A DNA stretch of 64,000 nt, taken from Rhodosorus marinus CCMP1338 (taxonomy: Eukaryota > Plantae > Rhodophyta). The stretch's first letter is position 1, and each line of letters starts with the position of its first letter. This document shows positions 4,187 to 57,377 of this stretch, one piece after another. Both the position numbers and the translations under genes were made by a program. A model generated the notes under the pieces. It saw only the letters and a list, made by a program, of their open reading frames with translations, had not been told where the DNA came from and did not search any database. The stretch spans positions 372,001 through 436,000 of the forward strand of contig JAMWBK010000007.1 of assembly GCA_029953675.1 (NCBI GenBank), written 5' to 3'.

Positions 4187-6342
4187 CATGCCCTTCCAAC
4201 TCAACTTATTGTATATGTATAAGTATTTTGAATCCCAGACTACGAGAGCCATCCCCACGGCCTATATATCTGCCTATTGTGTTCGCACACACTTGTATAT
4301 GTCCCCGTGTTTGTAACTGCTTTATATCCTAAAAGCGTCGAACAAGGTCGTTTGACATCATCCCAGCAGGAGGGAAAAGCAAGGCAGTACTTTTTGAACC
4401 GTTCAGCTCGTTTGCTCATGTGGCGGCTTTCTACAGCCTGTGTGCGCACATCCAGGGACTCAAGATTTTACCAGTCTTCCAGGTTTATGTACTTGTGATG
4501 GTACTGTAAAACGAGCTGCGGGCTCCTGGTGGAATGAAACAGATAACACATCTCGATCGCACCGCAAACTCTAGATCCCTTATCTGCAATTTCGGTAGTT
4601 GCTAGGAGTGAAAGGACTTTTGTATTTAGATCCAAGCGTTTTAGATCCCACGAAACAAGCACAACTGTTTCAACGAGTACCGCCATTCTGGAGGACTGAA
4701 ACTGGCATCAGATTGCAAAGGCAAGCCTGCGCTCTCTCCATCCGATACCAGCCTGTTTCTACTCTTGAAACTGTCGAAACCCTGGCGTAACCAGAAGGCA
4801 ACAGTGACGATAGGCTCCAGTTGACAACACTCTGCTATCAGCCCAGCTTGAACGCGTGTACTATGTGTGCGGGGAATGACTTACAGAGACACTCGTGCGT
4901 TTCACGGCGAAGCTGAACTTGCTAGTGGCGTGGATCGAGGACCCGGTGGCGGAACGAGCTTTTCGGTCGCTTGCGGCCATCGATTTCAGCGAGTCAGATT
5001 CCTGCAAAGGACGACTGAGAACAATGCTACGCCGGTGGCGAAAGTTCTGATTCGCTACGCCATCACGCTGACCGTACTGATCCTCGAACAGACAGTTAAG
5101 GATGAGAAGGGGACGAGCTGAAGGCACGCCTAAGATCCTCTCTTAACAGTCTGTCCGCGGAGAAGGCATCGATCTACGTCGTTCCCCGTGAAGACATGTT
5201 TCCAAGCAGCTCATCAACAAAAGCGCAACATCAGAAGCCCGGAGGCAGATACTTTCACGAGAGGCCCAACCATTGGATACTTCCATTAAAAATCTTTTCC
5301 ACCTTCAAACGTTCTCATAAATAATTGGTCAAAAAAGACTGAATATCCTCTATTAAAAATAACTTATAATTTCGGCTCTTCAAAGTTCGATACGAGAAAA
5401 ACAAGGGGGTGGTAAAGTTTTTCAGATAAGCATTTCCAACTGAATTGAAACACAATTCACACCTGTACAAAATAGACTTAAAATACACGAATATATCAAC
5501 TATTTTACATAAATACAATAATTACCGCCCATTGCACTAAAACTATAGAGGGGGATACCCAACTCCTTCATGCGCACCAAGAAAACATCTATACATAAAA
5601 AAAAAACCCCTCCAATCTTTTTCCTAAACCCCAAAATTTAATATTTTATCAATCTACAATCAGTTAACCAATAATGATTGAGCACATCGCCGCGAGATTT
5701 TCTATCGTACGAAATTTCATCTCCATATATGATCAAACTAACCATTCATTCGTCAATATTTATTGTATAAGGATTTAAATATTGCCGAAGTCGTTTTTTA
5801 AATGTATATATTTATTTTTTTGCATTAAGTATTTTAAAAGTAGTTTTTCTGGCCTCAATGGGGAAATAAAATTTTTTTTTTGGGTACTGAAGAAGAAGAA
5901 GTTGTCTTAAGGCGGTTTTTGTTTTGGAGTCGTTAGCGGAACGATCTCTTCTGCTCCATTGCTTTCTCCCTCTTGAAGACGCAATGGATTTATGAGGTGG
6001 GAAGAGGACTTTTTTCTTTTTAGGGGGAGGGGATGGTAGTTGAGGAGTAGATGGATGGAGAGGAGGAGGAAGAAGAGGATTAGAGGAAGAAGAGAAGGCT
6101 ATTTTGATTTCTACTGGTTGGGATTGGAGTGTGTTTTCGGGGGAGGAGAGATTTAGGTGTGTGGGGCCGGGCGGTGAATACTTGGGAGGGGAGAAGCTAC
6201 TTTATAACTTGTTTAGAGGGTTGCAAGGAGGGGTGTTTCGGGTTGTCGTGGAGTCGGATAGGGAAAGAGCTGAGTTTGAACTGGTAGAGAAGATGCTTTT
6301 GAGCTGGGTGGGGGTCTAGGTTGTAGATTTCGCTGGTTGAAG

Positions 6343-7754
6343 ATGGACGGGCTGGCCTTTGTTGGGTCGGGTAGCTCAGCATGGACCGGGGGGTTGAGGT
6401 ATCGGAGGAGCGTTATGAGCTCGAGGCCGAATGGGAGCTTTGTTTCGTCAGGGAGGTCGGTTGCTCCGGTGAGGCGGAGGGAGGAGGTGAAGTGCTCTGT
6501 TGCTGGGACGATGATTAACGCCGGGAGCAGCTTGGCTGGGTTGGCGGTTTTGGCGCTCACTATCTTGGTACACGAGGCTGGGCATTATCTCGCTGCGAGG
6601 TCGACGGGTATCGAGGTTGACAATTTTTCGGTTGGTTTTGGCCCGGCGCTTTGGAACTTTACGCCGAAAGGTTCGCAGACGAAGTTCACGCTGAGAGCGA
6701 TCCCACTGGGCGGATTCGTATCTTTTCCGCCGAAGACATGGGAAGACCCGGAAACTGGAGAGACGGTGGAAAGCGATAACCCGAATTTGCTGCAGAATAG
6801 ACCGGTCTCAGATAGAGTTCTCGTCGTTTCTGCTGGCGTCATTGCGAACATAATGCTGGCGTGGGCCTCACTATTTGTTAGCGTGAGTGCTTTTGGCGTT
6901 CCGACACTGGAGTACAGATCAGGAGTCGTGGTTACACAAGTGCTGGGTCCAGAGAGCTACGGTGCTAAATCAGGTATTTTACCTGGAGACGTTATTTTGT
7001 CCATAGATGGAACGGCCGTCCAAGGCGGTCCTAGCTCTGCCGGGGACGTTGCCAGTACGATAAGGACCAGTGAAGGTCGCACTATCATGATGGAGATGCA
7101 GCGCGGGGATGAAGTTGTAAATTTGGACGTAAGTATAAGCGCAGACTGAGACGGAGAAGAAGAATCAGTAGAAAACAAGCAATAGCGCCTAAGTACATCC
7201 CTTCTATTTCACCCTTTTTCTTATTGGGGGCGAAACAGGTGAAACCAAAATGTTGCTCTCCAACTGGGGAATCGCTGCTGGGCGTTCAGCTCCAGCCGAG
7301 AGCTGACATGTTCCGACTGAAAACTACTGATCTAGATAAGACGTTCAGAGTAACCGCTGGGGAATTCATTAGAGTGACGAATAGGACCACAACGGGCTTG
7401 AAGGAGATCGTTACCAACTTTGGTGAGAACGCGAAGAATGTGTCCGGACCAATTGGAGTCGTGTCCATGGGGGCCGACCTTGCAAGGAACGATCAGGCCT
7501 CTCTTCTGGCCTTTTGCGCTGCAATCTCAATGAACTTGGCAATTGTAAACTCGCTGCCGCTGCCTGCTCTGGATGGAGGCCAAATGGTGTTCCTCATTGC
7601 CGAGGCGGTTAAGGGATCCCCTGTATCCACCAGATGGCAAGAAGCTGTGAATAGGACCGCGCTGTTGATGTTCTTGACGTTCAGTGGTTTTCTGCTGTTC
7701 GGTGACATTGCCAAGCTCAACCTGATGAAGTCGTTGCAACAGCTCTTCGGTTAA
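6343..7754 (+). CDS. rseP: Plastid site-2 protease, RseP/ARASP-like M50 zinc metalloprotease with PDZ domain (2 exons)
   Basis: HEAGH zinc motif, FSVGFGP, RAIPLGGFV, PDZ-like GILPGDVILSIDG, and NSLPLPALDGGQ (LDG motif); intron 7129-7238. Confidence 0.93.
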
Positions 7755-9482: not shown

Positions 9483-11617
9483 CTATCTGCTCGGGTGCTG
9501 CGTCATGAGGGTGGACCGGCTATCATCAAAGAGGTCTACGGTGTCGTCGCCTGCAAAAGGTGATATTGGCACATGGGTAGAATTATAAGGTTCAGGTTCT
9601 GCCCTGGATGAAAAGCCTCCCCCGCCTGCGGAAGAAGATCTCCGAGTGGTTGTCATCAGCGGTGTCGCAAAGAGCTTTCGTCTTGGGGTTTCTGCAATCG
9701 CCTCAGGGGAAGGGGTAGCCAAGCACTGAGAATGTCGACTGAGCAGGTTACGGACTTCGGTTGACACAAGCACTCTGGGTGTGCTGCTCAACAGGTTCCG
9801 CTTCAAGGACGGCGACATTGAGGGCAGCCCCTTGACGTCCTTGAAACTCTTGTACGCTGATAACTTGGACACTACAGAAAAGGTGAAAGAAACAAGAAAC
9901 GGTCGTTGGGTTTGAGAAGCATAAAAAACGGCAGACGTGGTTGGCGTCTTGCCTACCCTGCCGATTTGTGTTCGGAGAAGCCTTTTGCGCCCGACGCGCG
10001 GAAAATTCCGTTTTCTCACGGCCTGTGTCAGTCCGACGCGAGATCGCATCCCTCGCTGATGCTTCCAATGAATCCGGAGCAGTCTGAGGATCCACATGTT
10101 CTTCATGTGCTCGGGGTTCCGCTCCGCAAGACCCGCGCGTTGACGGGTCTGCCAGAGCACCGCGATTCTCCTTATAAGGCATCACTCCCGATTCGCATTC
10201 CGGAGTCGACGAGATCAGGTCCGATTGTTTATCCCCCAGTAGGGGTTCCTCTTGGGGGGATCTAAAGATGTTCGAAATGTCGGCGAGAGTTTCCCCTTTG
10301 TCCTCATAGGAATACAGCTCAGACTCATATGCAGCGGCAGATGCGAGCAAATCTTCAAACTCATCGCCCCGCACGTTCGCGTCCAAAATCCCGTTAAAGT
10401 TCGAATCCACCTCAACCTTACGAGTTGCTTTTGACAGTTCGTGGTCGATGTTCCTCGAAAGAGTACGCATATCTGCTAGAGCACGCTCGAGAGCAGCAAC
10501 AATGTTTCTATGCTTCTCCAGTAGAGCTACGAGATCTCGTGAGATTCCATTGTCCACACTCGCGCCGGTCAAGAGCGCTTCCATGTTCCGAAGCGCCTCG
10601 TGTCGCTTCGTGATGAGTTCCGTGAGGGAATTTGAGCCATCTGTGAAGCGCCCTTCCAGGATACACGAATCGTCCGAGTCACTCAAGAAGGCAGCGACGA
10701 TGTTGCTGCTTTCTTTCATCCTCTCCTTAGCCGAGAACAAGCCTTGGAGTAGTTTGGATGCGCTCTCCTCTACATGCCTCATCTCATTGGCGGTTTCAGG
10801 TTCTACAGGACGAGGCCGCTCGTCATGCTCGAGAGCTTGAATCGAAGCATTTAGATTAGAGATTTTTTCTCCACGCCGAGCTTCAAGTTGCTCTGCCGCC
10901 GTGCGTACGCGTACATACTGTCTGCCCTGGGCAACGATCCTTGCCTTCAGCACTGTTGAGGACATTTCAGAGGTACGAACCGCATCACGAGTAACCGGTA
11001 TGGCAGATATCATCTCCGAAACGAGATCATCTATGTCGTATTCTCGTCCGAGAAAGCAGACAAGCGCGTGCGACGATAGAGGTAGGAGAACATCGACAAA
11101 CCGGGTCCCACCGAAGCTCTCCAGAAGGGACTTTCGCGATCCCCCCATGGGGAGCACTCTGGATCTTTCGAGTTCGACGAACTTTGCGTGAGCGAGCTTC
11201 AAGAAGTCCCTACGGGCAATGAACCATTTCAACCGATTAGAAATGTTCTGTCATAGCCAGTGCGTTTCTGGGAGGAAGGAAACCTTCACCTTTCTCGCGC
11301 TCTGTCCGTAACCGGCCAGCACCATTTGAACGCCTTCTCAGTCTCAACAGGTGAAATTCGGTAGAAAAGAAAGTGTAGAACTGGAAGTGCTGCTTTCTTG
11401 TTCCCAGTCTTATCGAAAATGTTCTGAAAAAATCCAAGGCAACGAGGCTTGAGCAGAACGGCCTCGACAAACCCGGGGAACTTTAGAAATCTGACAATTC
11501 CCTCACCTCTCGGAATGCAGTGCCATAGCGTTTGGACAACTTGACTGTATCAAAGCCCAGCAGCAGCAGGTTCTGGAACAGGAGACTACCGTCCGATAGG
11601 CGTTCTTCCAAGTCCAT
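9483..11617 (-). CDS. HAUS6: Augmin/HAUS complex subunit 6 (multi-exon)
   Basis: Spliced N-terminus MDLEERLSDGSLLFQNLLLLGFD..LHFLFYRISP..AFKWCWPVTDRARERDF..RKSLLESFGGTRFVDVLLPLSSHAL matches the HAUS6_N pattern, followed by coiled coil. The last exon is in the ORF 9483..10160 frame. Confidence 0.8.
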
Positions 11618-17445: not shown

Positions 17446-18664
17446 TCATCTTCGGCTTCCGTGGTCAGTGGTTTTATCGTCGAGCCTGGGCCTCAGGCCG
17501 TAGACGTAGGGCCCACGGACGCCTCCGTGGCCGCGTCTATCCCACTCACCAGTTACAAGCAGATTCAACACCTGAAAAAATTTCTTAATGTGGTTCACCG
17601 TCACCCTGACCGACGGCGGCACCAAGGTCGAATTGCGGATATGGTCCTTAATTATGCACAACCGCACCGAGTCGCGACTCGTTCTTCTGTCCGTGTTGTC
17701 AGTTATCTCATAAAGCTGGTGGACATTTCGAGCGATTAGGCGAAAGAGTTTTCGCTTCGCTTGGTTGCTAGTGATTGATGGGAGGTTGTCCTCCTCTGAC
17801 ATCTGAACGACGAGAATGACGGCAGTGATTCTTCCCCCAGTCAGCGTGGTGAGGTGAATTACGAGCAGCTCACATGGGAAGCGAATTCAACCTCAAGCGC
17901 TTTGTACGGGAGTCATTTATTTGCTATGAGTGCGTGGCTTACCAATTCTTGCAACCTCTTCTCTCGTTCATGAAGAGTCTGCGGGAACCATCGCTCACTC
18001 GAGGGCATGAAAAATTCACCCTTCGAAGGCCCAGGATCACGACTTCCAGTATCTGAGGAGTCTGTAGTGTCATCATGGGAAGCTTTGCGACTGACAGTTC
18101 GGACTTCCCCAGGTCGGGGATCAGCTGCCGTTCCGGTCCTGCTTCGCTTGCCCTGTAGATGCGCAGTTGGAAAAGGAAAAGTCGTCCCACAATTTGAATC
18201 AGCAACGAAACAATCAAAAGGAGGCGCAAGAGCAGTATAATCAAGAACCGAAAACATTTGCTCACCGATTTCGGCTTCCGGGGCTTCACAGCCTCCGCCT
18301 TCGCTTTCAATGCGCGTCCACGCTGTTCCGAACTGGTTAGGGTTCGCTTACTTCCTTCGCTTGCAGTATCGAAAGCTTCGCGTCTCTTCGCAGCAGCGAT
18401 TTTGATCTCGCTGACGACAATCAGAAGAGTGCCCCTCCTTAAGCCGGCTATAATCTCCTCGGGTTTCCCAATTATCAAGCGGTGGATCCTTCCAAGTACA
18501 ACCACCATACGGAAAAGGTAAGAGGTGCCGAAGAACCGCGCCCTGGCTCCCCTGACCTTTATCACCCGTCTCGGGTACACCCGAGAACCTGGCAAGCTTC
18601 TATGCTTATTTCCCACGAGCTCGTAGTTCTCCAGCAGCCGACGTTGCCGCTCACATTCGTACAA
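17446..18664 (-). CDS. Multi-exon coding region, either an independent hypothetical protein or the C-terminal extension of the adjacent cryptochrome-like gene
   Basis: ORFs 17939..18664, 17913..18257 and 17446..17802 are separated by GT..AG intron-like segments. There is no ATG or promoter island of its own, and ERQRRLLENYE resembles the final photolyase helix. Confidence 0.45.
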
Positions 18665-18741
18665 CCCTAAAATTGATACCCGTGACCTCGACAGAATCTA
18701 ATAGTGGATATCGAACAAACGTGCCACACCGCCTAGCCGGG

Positions 18742-21108
18742 TTAGGAAGTCGCCCCCTTTTTCTCTAGCACTAGCTGCTCACATACCTTTCTCGGAGCTT
18801 TCCATGGACAGAGGACGTACGTATCCGGCAAGTACGACATCTCGGGCAGATATCTCTTCACGTAGTCAGTGAAACCCTAACAAGAGAGCGCATCCGTAGT
18901 GCTAAGTAGTTCGGAACTTTCCTGGGCTAGATTGTTTTTGATTCACGGTGAATTGGACACCACAATACTAGCTTACCCGATGTCTAAGCCATCGACCCAC
19001 ATTTGGCCCCTGAGTGATCTTTTCCGCGGGGATCAGCATCCGCTCAAAGAGCTGGCATCGAAACTGGACTGTCGCCCGCTTCTTGTCCACGTACAGACTA
19101 TTGAGAAGCGTAGCGATTTCCTGCCACGGCACTCGCAACAGCACGATGGAGAAAACCACTAGAACAAATTCGTTCCTCATGGGCAACCATCCATCCTGAT
19201 TCAGCTGGTTCATTGAGGCGTCAATGACCGGAAAACCCGTCATTCCTTTCTTCAAGGCCTCGAAAGCGTTGTAGTCGGCCATTGTATTCAGTATCCGTCT
19301 TCGAAACAGTTCTTCCGCGTCGAGTGGAGCTCTTCTTCTTGCAGCAGACTTCTTATAGTCGTCCCATTCCCGCAAGCAAATACTCCGCAAAACTGAATCG
19401 CTGCATGCACCAGTCTGCTGCATGAAATGATACACAACTCGCGGAGATATCTCCCCAAAGCTCAGCTTCGGACCCAACATCCCGAGGTCGAAGAAAGGCG
19501 AGTTGTTTCGGTTGACTTCGAAAACGCTTGTCAGAACATCTTGCACCACATCGCATCCCACGTAGTTTCCCCATGCTGCGGCAATCCAAGCGGCACCAGG
19601 TTCATCTTCTCTGACGAGCTCAAACTCGTCAAGAGGAGTGGAATACAGTGTGTGTGAAGCAAAGCATCGGACAGGATCAGAGAGAGGTTTGTGCGGCATG
19701 GGAGGCGGAGTCAAGCTCAGCTGTCTCCTCCATCTGCTCATGAAGGTTTCAAAATCGGTGCAATCCAGTAGAACATCAGAATCTACTAGCAGATCAGAAC
19801 GATAATCATAGCACGCGACTCCAGACTCACGCAGTATGGACGAGAGTTCCACCTCCTTTTCCCTGTCTCTGGCCGACGTGCTCCGATTGAAATATACTGC
19901 ATCCGCGTCAACCTCCCTCACTAGTGCACTAACTTCATCAACTAGGCGGCCTCGACACGGTCGAAGAACCAAATCAGCACCAAGAGCTGCCAGTTCTTCA
20001 GACAGAGATTGAATGGAGTGGTTCATCCACCTGACGAGGATAGGAGGGAAAAGGCGCAGGTAAGCAAGCAAGCAAATTGATCCGTTTTGGACTAAATGTG
20101 CTTCTGACGATCAACCGGGAGGCATTACCAATTGCAGAAGGTGGACTGCCTTGTCCCAGTGCCAAACGGTTTCACTTTCTCCCCAGAAGGTCCCGCAATA
20201 GGCGGCGCTCGCTCTATCGATGCCCGCTGCTGGATGTTCCAGACGTCTACGAGCTTGTCACCGTTCAGGTCCCGGCCGGCTCCTGGAGCCGTGTGACGCG
20301 CTTCGCCTGGTAACAAACGGTCGACTTCCATTTTCTGAACTGACTGAAAGCTGTCTGTAATAGGCGAACCAATGGTCTCAGTATGCTCTGTTTTGGTTGT
20401 CGGTCTGACGAAACGATTGATTCTCCTCTGCATATCCCTGGGAACTATTCTAGGAGCTCTTCCATCCACAATTTCTATGTCCAAAGGTAAGGAATCACTC
20501 ATTCGAAAGTCCGGGGCGTCTCTGTAGCTATCGTCATCTTGAGGTTCATCCGGCTCCATGATGAGCACCAGCAGCAGGGGGGTCATTCGCCTCACAGCCG
20601 CGTGCAGCGCAAGATTATCATCCACCCGCAGATCCGATTTGCGAAAGAGGACAATGCTTGGTCTGCGATACCACGGAGCTCCAGGTGAGGACAGATCCAA
20701 ATAGAGAGCGCCAGGCCAATCGAAATCGGGCTTTAACAAAGCGTCGTGCTCCTCCTGAGTGACATGGTTGCTAGAAGATGCCTGGGGATCACCCTGGATC
20801 CCATAGATTACTTCCCGCAAGGAGCTCGGGACTCTTCTCCTTTTCTTCCTATTTGATCTGCGAGAACCTTTGCTTCCCGTACCGGGTTCAGACATGCCAC
20901 CCAATGGGGAAGCATGACTACCGCCCGAGCTAGTGCCATCGGTTCGGCGTCCAGTAACGGGGACATCAGAAGACTGTGTCCGTCCTGGGCCTAAAGGCTC
21001 CGGTGGGAAGAAGAGCAGCTCTTCTTCGTTGACAAGATTACTTCCAATGTTATGCGAATCCTGTTGAGAGCCGTAGCCCCCTCTAGAGTGTGGTTGCATG
21101 GACGCCAA
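18742..21108 (-). CDS. Divergent cryptochrome/photolyase family protein (plant-CRY-like), multi-exon
   Basis: SIVLFRKSDLRVDDNLALHAA; spliced NWWMNHSIQSL..LGADL; DADAVYFN; LSFGEISPRVVYH; GMTGFPVIDASMNQLNQDGW; a later exon reads DYVKRYLPEMSYLPDTYVLCPWKAP. The 3' end is uncertain. Confidence 0.85.
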
Positions 21109-28431: not shown

Positions 28432-29163
28432 ATGAAAGGTATCGACGCGACGACAGGCACGAAGGAGGCGTGGTTGGAATCACGAACGAAGCTGCTTGCA
28501 AAAGAGAAAGAGCTGAATCGCATGAAGGATGAGGTCGCGAAGATGAGACGGGAGCTGCCCCTTGTTGAGGTTGAGGACTACGTATTTGAGACCAAGGACG
28601 GGCCGAAAAAATTATCAGAGCTTTTCGGGGTAAATTCACAGCTGATAGTCCAACATTTCATGTTTGGACCTGAGTGGGAGGAAGGATGCGTTTCATGCAG
28701 CTTCTGGGCCGATAGCTTTGATCCCATGGTCATCCACGTAAATCAACGCGACGCTAGCTTCGTTGCGAGCTCCAGAGCTCCCGTTGAGAAACTTGAGGCC
28801 TTCAAGGAGCGCATGGGTTGGAAGTTTGAGTGGGTATCCGCGCTGAACAACCGTTTCAACTACGATTTCAACGTCTCCTTTCCGAAGGAGGGGAAAGCGG
28901 ATGACACTGCAATATACAACTACAGACCGAAGCAGGGGGATTACGAGGAGCTGCCCGGAATCAGTACCTTCTACCTAGATAAGGACACCGGGAAAGTCTA
29001 CCACCAGTACTCCTCCTATGCACGTGGCCTTGACGTACTCAATTCTGGTTACCAGCTTATTGATCTTCTTCCTAAAGGCCGAGACGAGAAGGACCTCCAG
29101 TGGAGCATGCAATGGCTCAAGAAACACGACCAATACACCGAGAAGCCCGTCGCATCCAATTAA
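28432..29163 (+). CDS. DUF899 family thioredoxin-like protein (bacterial-type), intronless
   Basis: LLAKEKEL..RRELP, QLIVQHFMFGPEWEEGCVSCSFWAD, VASSRAP, RMGWKFEWVS, FNYDFNV, YSSYARG, DLLPKGRDE. Confidence 0.88.
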   Translation: MKGIDATTGTKEAWLESRTKLLAKEKELNRMKDEVAKMRRELPLVEVEDYVFETKDGPKKLSELFGVNSQLIVQHFMFGPEWEEGCVSCSFWADSFDPMVIHVNQRDASFVASSRAPVEKLEAFKERMGWKFEWVSALNNRFNYDFNVSFPKEGKADDTAIYNYRPKQGDYEELPGISTFYLDKDTGKVYHQYSSYARGLDVLNSGYQLIDLLPKGRDEKDLQWSMQWLKKHDQYTEKPVASN

Positions 29164-32671: not shown

Positions 32672-34189
32672 CTACTCCACGGGGCTGTCTCCAAATAGGT
32701 TCTGCCTCGCGAGCCGGTCAATTGCAGTTTCTTCCTCGTCAAAGTCGCTCTTGCTTATAACGCACTTGAAGAGGTATCCCCAGTCTGGCCCAAAGTTTGC
32801 GGGACTGTAGAAAGTGTACCAAAACCGCCGCTGAGGGATGACCACCTGAAGTGCCGGCGTTTCTTCAATACGTTGTGATCGCTGCTGTCTCTTCTCAAGA
32901 TGAAGTGAGAACACTTTTCGCTGCTCGTGCTCGTCGAGGAAAAAGCATAGATCAGAGTACTTTCCAAGTGAAGTTTGGGTATCAAAAGTGACTGTGATCT
33001 CTCGGCACCAAGCAGGGAATTCGACGACCCGCTTGGAGAGCTGCATGGTCAGGATGCAAAGTACGCGTCAGTTGCTACATGCGAGGGATTATGGGATAAC
33101 TATTGAGCCAGAACTTACAGAAGCAAGTACACCTGTTGGGTGAGGGTGGTCGGACTCGATCATGGCCACCCTTCGCCGCGTCCTCTTCGCTACCTCCGCT
33201 TTTTTCGAATACAAAGCTTTCAAACCCGCAAAGCCAAGAACAGAGTCGTAGCGGTACCTCTCGATAATCTCCCCGGTGGTAAGTAGGCCGGACGGTTCGA
33301 CCTCACGAGCGAACAGGCAGGGGTCGATGTCGTAAATTCTCAGCAGCCCAGGCCGGACAAATCTTGCGACGCTCTGCAAAATTCTTTCTCTATCTCGTTC
33401 CTGAACCTCTCGCAACGATTGTTGGGGAATAAAAGAGTTGGCCATCCCCCAGCGAATCACCGCATGCCACAGTTGTTCTTCCGTACAGGACAGGTCCTCG
33501 AGCTGGAGCAGAAACTCGAGCACTTCCGGCCGCAAGCGACTGAACTGCTTCGTACCAACTACTTTATGAGAATTAGTTCGAAAGCAGTCCGTGATAACCC
33601 TCATCAAACCAAGACGCGGATTCTGGTGCGCTTGGTCCAGGAAGAAAATGCAGTTGCGCTCTGAGAGCTGCGTAGTAACATGCTTCCGACAAATTTCAGC
33701 CAAGGAATCCGCTCCAAGCCGCACCGCAAAGTCCCACAGCGAGAAGACGCGCTTGTCGCTGACCCTGATTTTGCCGGTGTAGAAGAACTCGACAACGGCT
33801 GAGGCAATAGTTGGACAAACATCAGTCCAAGCCCACTTCAATTGTCCTCTATTCCCTTGTTTCGCGTCGAGATCTATCTGCTTCCTTAAACCCGTGCACC
33901 GTGCAGCAATGAGGACCTTGTGCGTTTGGATCTCCACCTGCTCTTCCCCGTGGGTGACTGAAATCGACAAGTCCGTATCGATTCCTAATAAATACAGCTC
34001 ATGAACCCTTTTCAACAAGGCTCTTTTTGAGCTCAAAACACGGACTTCATCCCGAGGTCTGGAAAACGCTTCGCTTTTTCCCCAGTCACCTCGGCCCAAC
34101 CTCAAAGTCTTTCGTTCTCCAGACCACTCCGTCAGGAGCACCGTGTCGCTCACAGTGCTCCGGAGAACCTCCATCCCCAACGCTCCCAT
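32672..34189 (-). CDS. BTB/POZ-BACK domain protein with C-terminal CUB-like (ESxHP) domain (2 exons)
   Basis: THKVLIAARC, AVVEFFYTGKI, LAEICRKHVTTQLSERNC, CTEEQLWHAVIRWG; C-terminus IESDHPH..ITVTFD..DWGYLF. Confidence 0.85.
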
Positions 34190-34452: not shown

Positions 34453-36213
34453 TCAGGTTGTCCATTTCTGTTCGCCAGTTAGCAGTATGTCGAGGATGGT
34501 GTCGCTAGTGGCAATCGTTCGCGAGGGAAGAATTCGCAGGAGTTTCTTCGAGGCGTAGTTTTTCTCGTCGAGGATGAGGATGGTGTCAGATTCCTCACTC
34601 GGCTTTGGCGGTGTTAGCTTGCCTCCTGCGAACTCGATCAGCATTTCCAGATGGAGCCGTTCGGGCTCCGGGTTGGGGAAGTCGCCAACCAGCGCAAAGG
34701 AGGTGCTGTTGAACACCGGCGGCAGCGATCGTCGCCTTTTAATGTCAAATCCTACAGGTGTAAACTTTTCTTCGTCCAACCAGCGCCCCTCTTTGACGCT
34801 GTCTGCGAGCCACTCCTCGCGAACGATAAACTTACTTCCAGCGAGAGCAAGCATTATTCTTATGGATCGGTATCTTGCAGCGCCCCGCTTATTGACTCCG
34901 CTTATCACGTGCGTTACTTGCTTCATAGATTCTACACTTTCGACGACTTCGGCTCCCATGTAGTGACACATGCGCTTCATTAATTCCATCTCTTTGTGAT
35001 CTCGGATATTTGTGAATGCGATCGCCACTCCCGGACAAGCAGCTAGCTCGGACGACCGGCAACTAGGCTTTTCCGTCGGCCTCAACCAGGATATTGGAAC
35101 CGAAATGAGTCTGATCGAGTTTTTCGAGTCAATCTCATCGCTCGAATGGCTTGATGCAATGGCTGGTTGCTTCCGCGGCAGCATGTCTTTTCTCTCTGTG
35201 GTACCATCAACTCCCAGGATTACAGACAGAGAGGGAAAATCGGAAACGCTGTCTGCGTCTGAACAGCCATCAGCAATATCCTCGTCGCTGCTCACGATTC
35301 TCCGCTTGGCCGGCCGTCGAAAGACCTGTTCGTCCTCGTCGACTACTGAGCTCATTTCAACAATCTCGTCTTCCTCACCTGTTTTTTCTGGTTTCGTTAC
35401 CAACAGCCTCCCATCCAGCTCTATATTGGACACAGCGTTCCCCTTGTCTCCTGATAGCTCTTTCCTTCCGCAAGCTACCTCCTGCTCCCTCAAACATGCA
35501 TCCTTACCGGCGTCCAGCAGTTCGGATGCTAGGTTTGCAGGTCTAGGTGACCTCTTGCATTCATTTACAATTCCCTCAGTATCAGAAGTATCAAAACTTT
35601 CGGGTCCATGTGATAGCTTCCGGTCACCATTCGTGGCGGGTTCAGATGGCCTACTCCTTGCAGATGACCTCTTGCATTCATTTCCACCGTCTTTTGCAAT
35701 TCCCTCAGTAGCATCAAAATTTTCTGGTTCCTGCGAAAGCTTCCTGCCACCACTCTTGGCTTGTTCAGATGGCTTACTCTTCGCAGATGACCTCTTGCAT
35801 TCATTTCCACCGTCTTTTTCGATGCCCTTCGTAGTATCAGAACCTTCGGGTCCTTCTAGCTTCTGGTCACCACTCTTGGCGGGTTCAGATGGCCTGCTCC
35901 TCGCCCTGCCCACGACCACTCTTACCTCACTCTCCAGCCGCAAGAATCCCACGAGAAGATTTCGCAGGTGCTTATTCTGAATAAGATCCCTCGGATACGC
36001 AGGCAACTGACACGCTGGACACTTATCGCTTTCCTCAACGGCGGGCTTCACACACTCAAAACAAAAACTGTGATTGCACGAATCGATTCGGTACGGGTTC
36101 GCCAGAATCTCCCCACACAGGTAGCACCGCAATGTACTCCTGACCGTTTTCAACTGTTCTTCAACATTCGATAAAATCGTCTCCATTTCTTCTCCCCCTA
36201 CCCCCCTCTCCAA
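34453..36213 (-). CDS. BRCA1/BARD1-like RING and tandem BRCT protein, single long ORF
   Basis: RING CYLCGE..CNHSFCFECV..CPAC; BRCT VTHVISG..IMLALAGSKFIVREEWLADS; second BRCT FALVGDFPNP..LIEFAGGKL. Confidence 0.88.
   Translation of the reverse strand: MERGVGGEEMETILSNVEEQLKTVRSTLRCYLCGEILANPYRIDSCNHSFCFECVKPAVEESDKCPACQLPAYPRDLIQNKHLRNLLVGFLRLESEVRVVVGRARSRPSEPAKSGDQKLEGPEGSDTTKGIEKDGGNECKRSSAKSKPSEQAKSGGRKLSQEPENFDATEGIAKDGGNECKRSSARSRPSEPATNGDRKLSHGPESFDTSDTEGIVNECKRSPRPANLASELLDAGKDACLREQEVACGRKELSGDKGNAVSNIELDGRLLVTKPEKTGEEDEIVEMSSVVDEDEQVFRRPAKRRIVSSDEDIADGCSDADSVSDFPSLSVILGVDGTTERKDMLPRKQPAIASSHSSDEIDSKNSIRLISVPISWLRPTEKPSCRSSELAACPGVAIAFTNIRDHKEMELMKRMCHYMGAEVVESVESMKQVTHVISGVNKRGAARYRSIRIMLALAGSKFIVREEWLADSVKEGRWLDEEKFTPVGFDIKRRRSLPPVFNSTSFALVGDFPNPEPERLHLEMLIEFAGGKLTPPKPSEESDTILILDEKNYASKKLLRILPSRTIATSDTILDILLTGEQKWTT
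35548..35905. repeat. Three in-frame coding repeats (period 117-123 bp) in the BRCA1/BARD1-like linker
   Basis: TGACCTCTTGCATTCATTT recurs at 35548, 35665 and 35788; the peptide unit is (R/K)S(R/K)PSE.A..G..KL....E..D...GI...NECKRS. Confidence 0.9.
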
Positions 36214-54554: not shown

Positions 54555-55787
54555 CCTTAACCAATTGGCTTCGCTCCCTCAATGAGATCTCAATCCATCA
54601 AGTTCCACGTTCTAGTACATCTACAAAAACCGTTCCAAACGACAGGGAACTCCGTGACAAGAAGCAGACCCAATTCCGAATCAACCTGTGCTCGCACTTC
54701 TTCCCCCCTCTTCGAGCTCGAGATATCTCCACTAGACTCGTTGACGGACTGGAAAGACAGAACGGGACCGTTTCTGTCGGGTCTGTCTTATCTTTCTCTT
54801 TCGCTGAACTGATGTTTCTTTTAGAAAAACAAGATAATTCTAAATATGAAGAATCAGAAGCAAATATCAAGTTGCCCGTCCAACCGTAAGAAAAAGCTGC
54901 TTCGCCGAAGCTGTGCTTCCTGCCGGTCCAAATGCCGACAATTCCATCCTTGCAGAGAGCAAACGAAAACAAGCTAGGATACGGGACGGGGACGCGCTGG
55001 ACGTCTTTGTAGCGTTTACACAGAAGTAAAAAGATCCCAAATAGTAGTACAAAGCAGGAAACAATCGCACGCTGCCATCCGCTCTACCAAAACCTAAGCC
55101 CCCAAAAGAAGCAGAAAACCCCAGAAACCCCAAAAACCCTAAAAAGAAGTATTCAATCATTATTCAAAATAATGACTAAATAGTTTCTAATAGATTGACT
55201 CAAATCCACCTTCGTGCGGCCGACCACGAAATCTATTTTCATTTGATTTTGGAAAGGCCAGGCTGTCTATATTTCTTAGTACACTACTAACAGCTACTAA
55301 CCTCATAAGTTTGCATGGACGAATAATTGGATTTTTCTTATCTGATTCGATTAGGACATTTTGGGGTCTGTTTATCGGATTTTTTTTCGATGGATGGTAT
55401 GGCCGTGGTTGTCTCTTAGGGGTTTTGGTTTGGATTTCGGTTCATGTAAAGTTGGATGGCGGACTTGCGAGGATACTTGATCTTTCCCTGTTTGATGATG
55501 TCCTGGTTCGGTTTATTTTTTAATCTGCAAGGCTACTAGAAAACGCTTCCAGCGAGTCCCTGCGTCCCTCCCTTTATATTGTTCGCTTCCTTTGGGAATT
55601 GGAGCTCTGGAGTTGAGGAGGGATCAGGTCCGGGTGGAGAGACTTGAGCAGGGTTGGCGCTGGTGGCGGTTGAGCGCGGCTGAATAGTTTATTGTATTGG
55701 AAGTGGTCGATTGACGTACCTTTCGCGGTCGTCTGGGTTGATACGGTTGTAAGATCTGTGTTTTTTTTTTCCCAGCGGTGGGCAAGC

Positions 55788-57377
55788 ATGGAGGAGAACT
55801 ACGTATCGCCGTTGTCGACTCGGTACGCGTCGAAGGAGATGAGGGCGAATTTTGCGGATATCACGCGGTATCGTATTTGGAGGAAGCTGTGGCTTGCGCT
55901 GGCAGAGGCTGAGATGGAGCTTGGACTTGAGGTGACCCAGCAGCAAGTTGATGCGTTGAGGAATGCGCCAGACGTGGATTTGAAGCGCGCGGATGAGTTC
56001 GAGAGATCTCTTCGACATGACGTTATGGCGCATGTGCATGCTTTCGGTGAGCAAGTAATGGTGGCAAAGCCGATTATCCATCTCGGTGCGACCTCTTGCT
56101 TCGTGACAGACAACAGTGAGGTAGTCCAGATGCGACAAGGTCTGGACATTGTGATCAAACAGCTTTGGGGGTGTATATCAAACCTTGCCTCGTTCGCGAT
56201 GCAATGGAAAGACCTCCCAACTCTTGGATACACCCATTTTCAGACCGCACAGCCGACTACAGTAGGGAAGCGGGCGTGCCTGTGGCTACAGGACTTCCTG
56301 TACGACGTGCAGAACCTCGAACACGTTCGGGACAATCTCAGAATGCGCGGTGTCAAAGGAACGACGGGAACTCAAGCCAGTTTCCTGGCTCTCTTCGACA
56401 ATGACCACGAGAAATGTCGGCAACTGGACAAGAAAGTTTCTGAGAAGATGAATTTTCACAAAACTTGGACGGTCACCGGTCAGACCTATACCCGGAAGCA
56501 GGACTACGTCGTGCTCACAGCTCTTGCTGGGGTCGGTCAAAGCTCGGCAAAAATGGCGAATGATATTCGCTTGCTGGCTCATTTGAAGGAGGTTGAGGAA
56601 CCGTTTGAGAAGAAGCAGATCGGATCGAGTGCGATGCCATACAAGAGAAACCCTATGAGGTGCGAGCGACTATGCGGAATCGCGAGATTCTTGCAGAACT
56701 TGGTTTTGAATCCAGCAGAGACTGCAAGCGTCCAGTGGCTTGAACGCAGTCTGGACGACAGTGCAAATCGTCGACTTGCAAACTCAGAAGCATTCCTGGC
56801 CACTGACGCATGCCTCCAGTTGGTGGCAAACGTGACCTCAGGCTTGGTCGTCCATCCAAAGGTAGTTCCATTGACTTCAGAAACGGATTCTCCGCCGCGG
56901 GACGTACCAGGCATTTACTAACACAACGTGCTGACTCCAATCCAGGTCGTAGAGAAGCATATGAATGAGGAGCTTCCCTTTTTGGCAACGGAGAACATCA
57001 TGATGGCTGCGGTGAGGAAGGGAGGAGATCGACAAGTACGTAACACTTGCACTGTCATCAGCAAATGAGTAATTCTCAGCTTTTTTTGGCTTCTTGGCAA
57101 TTCTTCACTATAGGAGCTCCACGAAGTTATCCGTGGCCACTCAGTCGCCGCAGGGGCGAGAATCAAGGAGGAAGGCCTAAGCAACGATCTCTTGGAACGA
57201 ATTCGTGCCGACCCAGCTTTCAGCTCCGTGGAAGGTGAACTAGACGACATTCTAGACACGAAGAACTTCATCGGAAGGGCATCGGAGCAGGTTGTGGACT
57301 TCCTTGAAGGCGATGTGTATCCGGAGCTAAACGCGCATAACATCGATAAATCTTTCACAGGGGAAGTCAATGTGTGA
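55788..57377 (+). CDS. ADSL: Adenylosuccinate lyase, animal/fungal (ADE13/ADSL) type (3 exons)
   Basis: [52 protein letters not shown] and the signature [10 protein letters not shown]. Confidence 0.95.

Follow-up and report, generated by a model that had tools for sequence, protein, structure and literature searches.

An eroded cryptochrome-like gene in the red alga Rhodosorus marinus and the C-terminal domain that it shares with its relatives

Can a cryptochrome in which most of the flavin pocket has been replaced still sense light, and if not, for what would such a protein be kept? The question is raised by NDN08_004324, a gene of Rhodosorus marinus CCMP1338 that lies on the minus strand of a 64,000-nucleotide stretch of contig JAMWBK010000007.1 (positions 372,001 to 436,000, forward strand; assembly GCA_029953675.1, published in PMC10250338). 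This whole stretch, which is eukaryotic with ~50% G+C, is referred to as the window, and coordinates are window positions. The gene product (KAJ8903214.1; UniRef A0AAV8UKX9, “hypothetical protein”) is an exact match to the spliced 1037-aa translation. An earlier sequence-only reading had proposed a nuclear, possibly light-independent cryptochrome-like protein in which the pocket for flavin adenine dinucleotide (FAD) is eroded. Having followed this proposal computationally, we lean towards a nuclear, light-blind cryptochrome derivative that would act through a conserved C-terminal domain (CTD). The substitutions described below suggest that the protein probably acts without sensing light.

The flavin pocket and the tryptophan triad

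The plant-cryptochrome-like photolyase homology region (PHR) described from the sequence is well supported. The peptides quoted for the protein (ALKKGMTGFPVIDASMNQLNQDGWLPMRNEF, VPWQEI, LLNSLYVDKK and RRSNRKKRRR, the last at aa 80-89) are all found on the minus strand where they had been placed, in two long open reading frames (ORFs), 20125-21108 and 18968-20071, that match PF00875 and PF03441. ORF 18968-20071 alone finds the PHR structures of plant CRY2 and CRY1 at E 2e-21 to 1e-19 (phmmer). Arabidopsis CRY1 (AtCRY1) is matched by phmmer at E 3.9e-30 and CRY2 at 6.7e-28, and both Pfam families score above their cut-offs: PF00875 at E 3e-22 (79.7 bits, cut-off 26.6), its match divided in two by an insertion, and PF03441 (FAD_binding_7) at E 3.3e-21. 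The predicted fold agrees, with TM scores normalised to target of 0.76-0.79 against 4U63, 1U3C and 6K8I for the PHR part of the model in Foldseek.

For the comparison of individual residues, AtCRY1 residues 14-494 were rebuilt from HMMER alignments, with W324, W377, W400, D390, D392, D396 and R362 checked against literature numbering, and all sequences were aligned to one PHR profile. The canonical set comprises 33 red-algal family members, in which the motifs TS[RK]LSP, FPW, GW[ILV]HNx[ML]RF, LPW and [LVI]DGDxxxNxLGWQW are almost invariant. The equivalents in NDN08_004324 are LGMLGP, LNT, GWLPMRNEF, VPW and VDKKRATVQFRCQL, placed as follows.

19469-19486, minus strand: LGMLGP, replacing the flavin-phosphate motif TSxLSP (T247L, S248G, S251G); T, S and S are kept in 31/33, 33/33 and 33/33 of the canonical family
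19283-19291, minus strand: LNT, replacing FPW, with the distal Trp W324 changed to Thr; W in 31/33 of the family, S in L001
19166-19192, minus strand: GWLPMRNEF, replacing GW[ILV]HNx[ML]RF (H358P, N/D359M, R362E); H, N and R in 32/33, 32/33 and 33/33
19124-19132, minus strand: VPW, with the medial Trp W377 retained
19049-19093, minus strand: YVDKKRATVQFRCQL, replacing L[VIL]DGDxxxNxLGWQW; D390 is kept, with G391K, D392K, N/D396V, G399R, W400C and W402L

Written out in AtCRY1 numbering, the changed positions are T247L, S248G, S251G, W324T, W334L, H358P, N/D359M, R362E, W385N, G/A391K, D392K, N/D396V, G399R, W400C and W/Y402L, and R297, W356, R360, W377 and D390 are kept. The ungapped HMMER alignment to AtCRY1 independently contains W324T, H358P, D359M, R362E, W385N, D392K, D396V and W400C, with W377 and D390 kept, and it reproduces the pairing with LLNSLYVDKK on which the sequence-only reading had relied. 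The claim that electron-transfer and flavin-contact positions are replaced therefore stands, as the same positions are near-invariant in the 33 related red-algal proteins. These include two paralogs in the same genome, NDN08_007876 (P0201) and NDN08_005570 (P0374), both with an intact FAD pocket, Trp triad and CTD. A regular-expression search of the C-terminus of NDN08_004324 for the DAS motif (DQxVP, acidic run, STAES) found none of its elements.

The syntenic ortholog on the Logan contig L001 (sample SRR22824290) presents an intermediate state. The triad W400-W377-W324 reads C, W, T in NDN08_004324 and W, W, S in L001, which also keeps T247, H358 and W334. Position 396, where plant cryptochromes have the Asp that donates a proton and faces N5 of the flavin, is Val in both R. 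marinus strains and in L001, and Asn in the canonical red-algal members. Losses of S248, S251, W324, N359, R362 and D392 are common to L001 and Rhodosorus, as are the identical replacements N396V and G399R, and the erosion must therefore have begun before the two lines split. Of 105 columns that are at least 90% conserved in the 33 canonical members, AtCRY1 keeps 80, L001 74 and NDN08_004324 53; in the helical domain NDN08_004324 retains 39 of 84.

A pocket remodelled to this extent might nevertheless serve a photoreceptor, by binding FAD weakly or in a new manner, or by binding another chromophore, with light signalling that dispenses with the canonical Trp triad. The helical domain is still constrained, at 86.7% identity between strains compared with 76% for the insertion; V396, Q397 and R399 are new pocket residues common to R. 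marinus and L001 (motif VQ[FL]R); and W356, R360, D390 and W377 are kept. Vertebrate cryptochromes bind FAD weakly and their pocket is nonetheless regulatory, while plant cryptochromes with mutated Trp triads can stay active in vivo. We nevertheless consider a retained photoreceptor unlikely. The three phosphate-binding hydroxyls are lost, the Asn/Asp facing N5 of the flavin is now Val, and the Arg that pairs with D390 is now Glu. Positions 391-392 have become Lys-Lys in place of Gly-Asp, and beside the proximal Trp, itself changed to Cys, Gly399 is now Arg. All of these lost positions are invariant in 31-33 of the 33 photoactive relatives.

Gene structure, transcripts and selection

The gene is longer than the sequence-only reading had proposed. 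Its boundaries, 18742-21108, were wrong at both ends: 21108 is a TTG codon, in frame but three codons ahead of the ATG at 21099, and the stop codon at 18742-18744 is intronic. That model lacked ~330 aa, the last third of the protein, comprising the PHR end with the YPxxV motif region, a basic disordered linker and the conserved CTD. NDN08_004324 instead has six exons on the minus strand, from 21099 to 17446, joined by GT-AG splicing across introns of 89-140 nt into an intact 3114-nt ORF that spans all six. The NCBI annotation at the locus has a 1037-residue product with PF00875 and PF03441 and shares the gene boundary at 21099.

20129-21099, minus strand: exon 1, aa 1-324 with the last codon split; start ATG at 21099, donor TG|GTAATG; N-terminal extension (aa 1-146), beta1-alpha1-beta2 (aa 147-186) and insertion (aa 187-320)
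20031-20128, minus strand: intron 1, 98 nt, GTAATG...CAG; L001 has an intron at the same place
18977-20030, minus strand: exon 2, aa 324-675; remaining alpha/beta domain, the region between the domains and the greater part of the helical (FAD_binding_7) domain, with the eroded pocket, the PF00875/PF03441 matches and the AtCRY1 alignment
18877-18976, minus strand: intron 2, 100 nt, GTAAGC...TAG; equivalent intron in L001
18787-18876, minus strand: exon 3, aa 676-705, GFTDYVKRYLPEMSYLPDTYVLCPWKAPRK; 30 aa in the window and in L001 alike, 59% identical
18698-18786, minus strand: intron 3, 89 nt, GTATGT...TAG; encloses the stop codon at 18742-18744
18266-18697, minus strand: exon 4, aa 706-849; PHR end (..VYPRRVIKVRGARARF, which corresponds to YPxPIVxxxxARxRA), post-PHR helices and start of the basic linker, a block conserved in L001
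18153-18265, minus strand: intron 4, 113 nt, GTGAGC...CAG; L001 acceptor at the equivalent position
17943-18152, minus strand: exon 5, aa 850-919; disordered basic/Ser-rich linker and first CTD helix
17803-17942, minus strand: intron 5, 140 nt, GTAAGC...CAG
17446-17802, minus strand: exon 6, aa 920-1037 and stop (17446-17448); CTD core ..DRRTSRDSVRLCIIKD..RVTVNHIKKFF..VTGEWDRRGHGGVRGPYVYGLR

The junction ..FCNW|WMNHSIQSL had been read correctly and is produced by the GT-AG intron at 20031-20128. A gene end at 18742 is ruled out, as the stop sits in intron 3 and both the YPxPIV region and the conserved domain continue downstream; the photolyase C-terminal motif found there reads VYPRRVIKV..ARARF in the window and FYPNRIVSV..RRKF in L001. 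The ORF at 17446-17802 is likewise not a separate gene, being exon 6 of NDN08_004324, which is 66% identical to L001 and 94.5% identical to a second Rhodosorus strain. The insertion is not a retained intron, since it is in frame and is gap-free in the transcript-derived ORFs P0347 and P0197 of another strain.

The MMETSP transcriptome of a second R. marinus strain includes a 1037-aa ORF (UniRef A0A7S3E6R5) that is 86.6% identical to the protein and collinear with it, with zero gaps including the insertion. A contig from the same strain, L008 (JGI sample 3300017118), covers exon 1 at 90.75% nucleotide identity; its positions 1343-1437 retain intron 1, ~70% identical to the window intron, and L008 is thus genomic DNA or an unspliced transcript. 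Nei-Gojobori comparison of R. marinus with the second strain over exon 1 gives a synonymous divergence (dS) of ~0.2 and a ratio of nonsynonymous to synonymous divergence (dN/dS) of 0.32; within the exon the ratio is lowest over beta1-alpha1-beta2 (aa 129-186, 0.03), intermediate in the N-terminal extension (0.25) and highest in the insertion (0.63). As dN/dS covers exon 1, constraint on the helical domain and the CTD was measured as amino acid identity; calibrated on the exon 1 identities, we estimate rather than measure a helical-domain dN/dS of roughly 0.3. Identities by region are as follows.

Beta1 region: 98% to the second strain, 74% to L001
CTD: 94.5% to the second strain, 65% to L001
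N-terminal extension: 89% to the second strain
Rest of the alpha/beta domain: 56% to L001
Helical domain: 86.7% to the second strain, 32% to L001
Linker: 82.7% to the second strain, 33% to L001
Insertion: 76.1% to the second strain, 23% to L001

L001 is far more distant. Only the coding blocks are conserved, at 36-66% amino acid identity, and the DNA can be aligned over just 65 nt (80%) in the stretch before beta1, with synonymous sites saturated. The L001 gene model, inferred in this analysis, has the same exon layout as NDN08_004324 with introns that cannot be aligned. Positions 1-23 of L001 are Illumina adapter sequence (CCTACACGACGCTCTTCCGATCT), and its first codons are therefore not genomic.

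Taken over both comparisons, the gene is under purifying selection that is strongest on the PHR start and the CTD and relaxed on the flavin domain. It has still to be asked whether the erosion is simply loss of function in a young pseudogene or a dispensable relic, the outcome that the sequence-only reading had itself offered as a refutation of its proposal. The domain-wide divergence of the helical domain (39/84 conserved columns kept), the long branch in the tree described below, and a helical identity between R. marinus and L001 (32%) no higher than that of the linker (33%) are what such decay would look like. It is nonetheless already largely refuted, and we regard it as highly improbable: the 3114-nt, six-exon ORF is intact; the collinear 1037-aa transcript ORF of the other strain has the same length and zero indels at dS ~0.2; L001 keeps the exon structure despite DNA that cannot be aligned; exon 1 has a dN/dS of 0.03 to 0.32; and the CTD is 94.5% and 65% conserved.

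Architecture, family and the C-terminal domain

A full-length AlphaFold model built with a 97-sequence alignment divides the protein into six parts.

aa 1-139: disordered, with RRSNRKKRRR at 80-89
aa 148-186: PHR beta1-alpha1-beta2, pLDDT (predicted local distance difference test) ~96
aa 190-306: disordered insertion, pLDDT <50, with a single short helix on LVDVWN (285-292)
aa 320-790: remainder of the PHR, pLDDT mostly >90, with the post-PHR helices at aa 753-792
aa 794-903: disordered basic/Ser-rich linker
aa 909-1030: compact CTD, pLDDT ~93 in the full-length model

Within the extension and the insertion, the following elements can be placed.

20833-20862, minus strand: RRSNRKKRRR (aa 80-89), a basic cluster resembling a nuclear localization signal (NLS); RRSGRKKRRRK in L001 and RRSNRKKRRK in the MMETSP strain
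20656-20721, minus strand: DWPGALYLDLSSPGAPWYRRPS, a motif running into beta1 that is among the most conserved stretches of the clade and nearly identical in L001
20140-20541, minus strand: aa 187-320, the insertion that separates beta2 from alpha2; it is coding, evolves fast and is predicted to be disordered
20236-20253, minus strand: LVDVWN, a short motif in the insertion; [LIV][LIV]DVWN occurs at the same position in R. marinus, L001 (aa 323) and the canonical A-type protein P0228 (aa 87)

The sizes given in the sequence-only reading for these two additions hold, with 146 aa before beta1 and ~125-134 aa more than AtCRY1 in the insertion; their novelty does not, as both traits are family-wide. 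Clusters of the KRRR kind lie upstream of beta1 in most B-type members of the family described below, and in A-type relatives the site of the insertion is occupied by one of ~30-100 aa. The basic motif had been singled out with good reason: the RKKRRR-bearing extension is conserved in the L001 ortholog, a protein only 43% identical overall. The L001 gene has one additional intron within its insertion, and [LIV][LIV]DVWN may be a linear interaction motif in an otherwise unconserved segment.

An exhaustive HMMER search with the full protein retrieved ~35 long proteins (1000-1750 aa) in which a match to the PHR is accompanied by one to the CTD at the extreme C-terminus, all with the layout of PHR, disordered linker and conserved ~110-aa CTD. 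All members with a species name belong to the Rhodophyta and come from the genera below.

Agarophyton chilense: CAN8063794.1
Porphyridium purpureum: KAA8499513.1 (“Cryptochrome-2”)
Galdieria yellowstonensis: KAK4526164.1
Cyanidium caldarium: KAK4536209.1
Cyanidiococcus yangmingshanensis: KAF6003995.1 (“Cryptochrome-1”)
Hildenbrandia rubra: a further member
R. marinus, outside the window: NDN08_007876 (P0201, 1021 aa) and NDN08_005570 (P0374, 805 aa), both B type

Two types can be told apart.

A type: RVTVNH and WDRRGHGG in the CTD, the lead-in ARRMAAMDY..EQWQAIALHLL, and a ~30-100-aa insertion after beta2
B type: KIYKIK.FF and WDRHNHGG in the CTD, no insertion, and usually a KRRR cluster in the N-terminal extension

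This split fits the two plant-like cryptochromes reported for Gracilariopsis chorda, of which Gc-pCRY2 is a family member and was nuclear in a heterologous system (PMC10853006). With two intact B-type members in its genome, R. marinus has three paralogs, of which the eroded gene is one.

The eroded members are NDN08_004324, its counterpart in the second Rhodosorus strain, L001 and P0229, and the motif P[VIM]RCFA is private to them. P0229 (L007 460-2220, JGI sample 3300016711) is a still more degenerate PHR fused to the CTD, in which EGQLPLFLQG stands for GWxHNxxR and the DGD..GWQW region can no longer be recognised; it matches L001 best and has the P[VIM]RCFA motif of the clade. The gene adjoining it on L007 matches PF26188 (RESC6). 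A neighbour-joining (NJ) tree on 404 PHR columns (100 bootstraps, distance method only) places the red-algal family beside the plant cryptochrome clade, with the bacterial class III-like photolyases outside; bootstrap support is 88 for the red-algal family, 100 for the A type and 100 for the eroded clade. The latter sits on a very long branch, its PHR ~70% divergent from both family types. In its CTD, its insertion and [LIV][LIV]DVWN, which P0228 also has, the clade looks A-like; in its N-terminal KRRR cluster, the W[FY]R[KR]PS before beta1 and WW[LM] it looks B-like. The sequence-only reading had proposed a distinct subfamily of the cryptochrome/photolyase family (CPF); a fully supported clade with private motifs does exist, and it is a derived branch within the red-algal plant-like cryptochrome family rather than a new CPF class.

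The CTD (aa 909-1030; window 17470-17975, minus strand) ends essentially all red-algal plant-like cryptochromes. Its signature, ..DRxTS[KR]x[YF]VRLCx[LI]KD..., a variable loop and ...K.FF..L.L.VTGEWDR..HGGVRGPYVYG, includes 15 invariant columns in 23 aligned members, and a search with exon 6 only found the domain on three further contigs. On one of these, L003 1-3340 (JGI sample 3300079842; 74% G+C), a PHR with a canonical pocket is followed by a linker rich in Q, P and A and by the CTD; the CTD is in a frame other than that of the 1013-aa ORF, a sign of an intron or of an indel in the assembly. The conserved domain is unmentioned in PMC10853006 and in two recent algal-photoreceptor reviews.

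Modelled alone, the CTD reaches pLDDT 82 and a predicted TM score (pTM) of 0.73, and its predicted topology runs from one helix through a pair of short strands, a pair of helices and a long loop rich in Gly to a hairpin, which is compatible with a three-helix bundle carrying a beta-hairpin wing. The Foldseek top list is almost all winged-helix: RFX5 (8zjr_M, the best TM score, 0.66 normalised to target, probability 0.82), Fur, PadR/LmrR, the winged helix of ORC/Cdc6, cullin WHB, Rok and FOX. An RFX domain was considered and rejected, with an hhalign probability of 0.2% against RFX1 (1DP7) and RFX5; the lead had come from the wing RRLGTRG..YHYYG, and no sequence support for it was found, leaving a weak fold resemblance. 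The CTD is thus an uncharacterised domain, with a predicted fold that weakly suggests a winged helix.

These observations can be assembled into a possible course of events. NDN08_004324 would descend from the red-algal plant-like cryptochrome family, whose other members have an intact FAD pocket and Trp triad. Photochemically essential positions would have started to change in the ancestor shared with L001, and in the Rhodosorus line the entire helical domain would have drifted further afterwards. The present PHR would then neither bind FAD canonically nor carry out light-driven electron transfer, which would make the protein light-blind, and would be retained as a folded scaffold. With RKKRRR as a putative NLS, the protein would be imported into the nucleus and would act there through the CTD, the module under strongest constraint, either constitutively or by combining or competing with the photoactive paralogs NDN08_007876 and NDN08_005570 that bear the same CTD.

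The last option can be extended into an explanation of its own, in which the protein is chiefly a decoy or modulator of the two canonical paralogs and tunes their light signalling through PHR hetero-oligomers or competition for the CTD target. R. marinus has three CTD-bearing family members, two canonical and one eroded, and the PHR alpha/beta domain and the CTD are the best-conserved parts. Plant cryptochromes signal via PHR homo-oligomers, which are blocked by BIC proteins. However, the PHR of the eroded clade is ~70% divergent from both family types, so that interaction interfaces may not be shared with the paralogs, and the eroded CTD is of A type (RVTVNH, WDRRGHGG) where the R. marinus paralogs are of B type (KIYK.K, WDRH.HGG). 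We give this explanation only a minor share of our confidence.

A light-blind derivative acting through its CTD remains our preferred reading, and there are several points that weigh against it. Flavin loss, nuclear localisation and an output role for the CTD are all deduced from sequence and model. In L001 the losses favour flavin-contact columns (7/11 against 24/94; Fisher p = 0.014), whereas those in NDN08_004324 show no statistical concentration there (7/11 against 45/94, p = 0.25) and look like domain-wide relaxation rather than targeted change; the contact list used follows what is generally described for the E. coli photolyase structure and was not derived from coordinates. Elements of the pocket survive, W356, R360, R297, D390 and W377 in NDN08_004324 and additionally T247, H358, W334 and W400 in L001, so that weak or non-canonical flavin binding, as in vertebrate cryptochromes, is conceivable. 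The transcript evidence comes from a different strain (dS ~0.2), not from CCMP1338. In the PHR tree the eroded clade groups with the A type in only 49 of 100 NJ bootstraps and with the B type in 4, and its motifs are mixed. For the CTD, Foldseek gave no significant fold match in the PDB (best E 0.16, TM score normalised to query at most 0.49), and the 23 members scanned gave no Pfam match (PF02257 included) and no sequence-profile match in the PDB. Its net charge, ~+1 at the family median, is uninformative on DNA binding. Because of the missing fold and sequence matches and this low charge, DNA binding by the CTD is a guess.

If the guess were right, the family could be viewed as one-component light-regulated chromatin- or DNA-binding factors, in which a PHR sensor is joined to a new output of winged-helix type, and NDN08_004324 would be a light-blind, constitutive or dominant-negative arm that keeps the output domain and the nuclear address. 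We offer this wider scheme as a long shot. Aureochromes follow a comparable logic. Red algae are not known to have phytochromes or phototropins, and cryptochromes are thought to carry most red-algal light signalling. For the output module of red-algal plant-like cryptochromes the CTD, to which neither Pfam nor the PDB offers a relative, suggests itself as the obvious candidate. We prefer to think of the locus as a natural separation-of-function allele of unchanged architecture, whose sensor pocket has been dismantled although purifying selection maintains the gene beside two intact paralogs. Set side by side, the three proteins of R. marinus would reveal which roles are left to the PHR scaffold and the CTD once photochemistry is gone, and would test whether flavin dependence, whose loss is known from the vertebrate clock cryptochromes, has been lost independently in the plant-type branch.

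Five neighbouring genes in the window look ordinary, with no sign of a photoreceptor or DNA-repair cluster; a sixth, for a DUF899 protein, is listed with them.

6337-7149, plus strand: M50/PDZ site-2 protease
9748-11232, minus strand: HAUS6 N-terminal-like protein, just under the Pfam cut-off
28432-29163, plus strand: single-exon DUF899 gene (PF05988, E 5.5e-81, a family described as bacterial and of unknown function; 243-aa product at NCBI), which may be an old horizontal transfer
33089-34189, minus strand: BTB-BACK protein
34453-36213, minus strand: BARD1-like RING and BRCT protein
55692-56921, plus strand: adenylosuccinate lyase (ADSL), 100% identical to R. marinus NDN08_004338; its best PDB matches, human and fungal, had suggested an opisthokont source, which this identity rules out

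Comparison with known systems

The closest systems are the red-algal plant-like cryptochromes themselves. Gc-pCRY1/2 (PMC10853006), P. purpureum KAA8499513.1, NDN08_007876 and NDN08_005570 have the same layout, with an N-terminal extension that often carries KRRR, the PHR, a linker that is long and disordered, and VTGEWDR..HGGVRGPYVYG closing the CTD. NDN08_004324 differs from them in that its FAD pocket and two Trp residues of the triad are replaced, in its very long branch, and in a mixture of traits that combines an A-type CTD and insertion with a B-type N-terminal KRRR cluster and WFRxPS.

Plant CRY1 and CRY2 are sister to the red-algal proteins in the NJ tree, and the AtCRY1 PHR (PDB 1U3C) is the best PDB sequence match (E 3.9e-30), with a TM score normalised to target of 0.77. 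Unlike the plant proteins, NDN08_004324 has no DAS motif, has V for D396, T for W324, C for W400 and replaced FAD contacts, and has, besides a large inserted loop and an extension at the N-terminus, a folded CTD where plant cryptochromes have the disordered cryptochrome C-terminal extension (CCT). The class III cyclobutane pyrimidine dimer (CPD) photolyase PhrA of Agrobacterium (PDB 4U63) is the top Foldseek match (E 4.7e-22; sequence match E 4e-24). Canonical red-algal relatives carry the photolyase-type Asn at 396, whereas NDN08_004324 has N396V and has lost FAD contacts and two triad Trp residues, as well as having gained eukaryotic extensions and the CTD. Without a conserved catalytic cofactor site, DNA repair by the protein is very unlikely.

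Vertebrate type II cryptochromes (mCRY1/2) are nuclear and light-independent, bind flavin weakly and use the PHR as a protein-interaction scaffold. They are among the fold matches of the PHR, and the likeness is one of functional analogy with no relationship implied. They belong to another CPF clade (6-4/animal), keep most of the pocket residues and are without this CTD.

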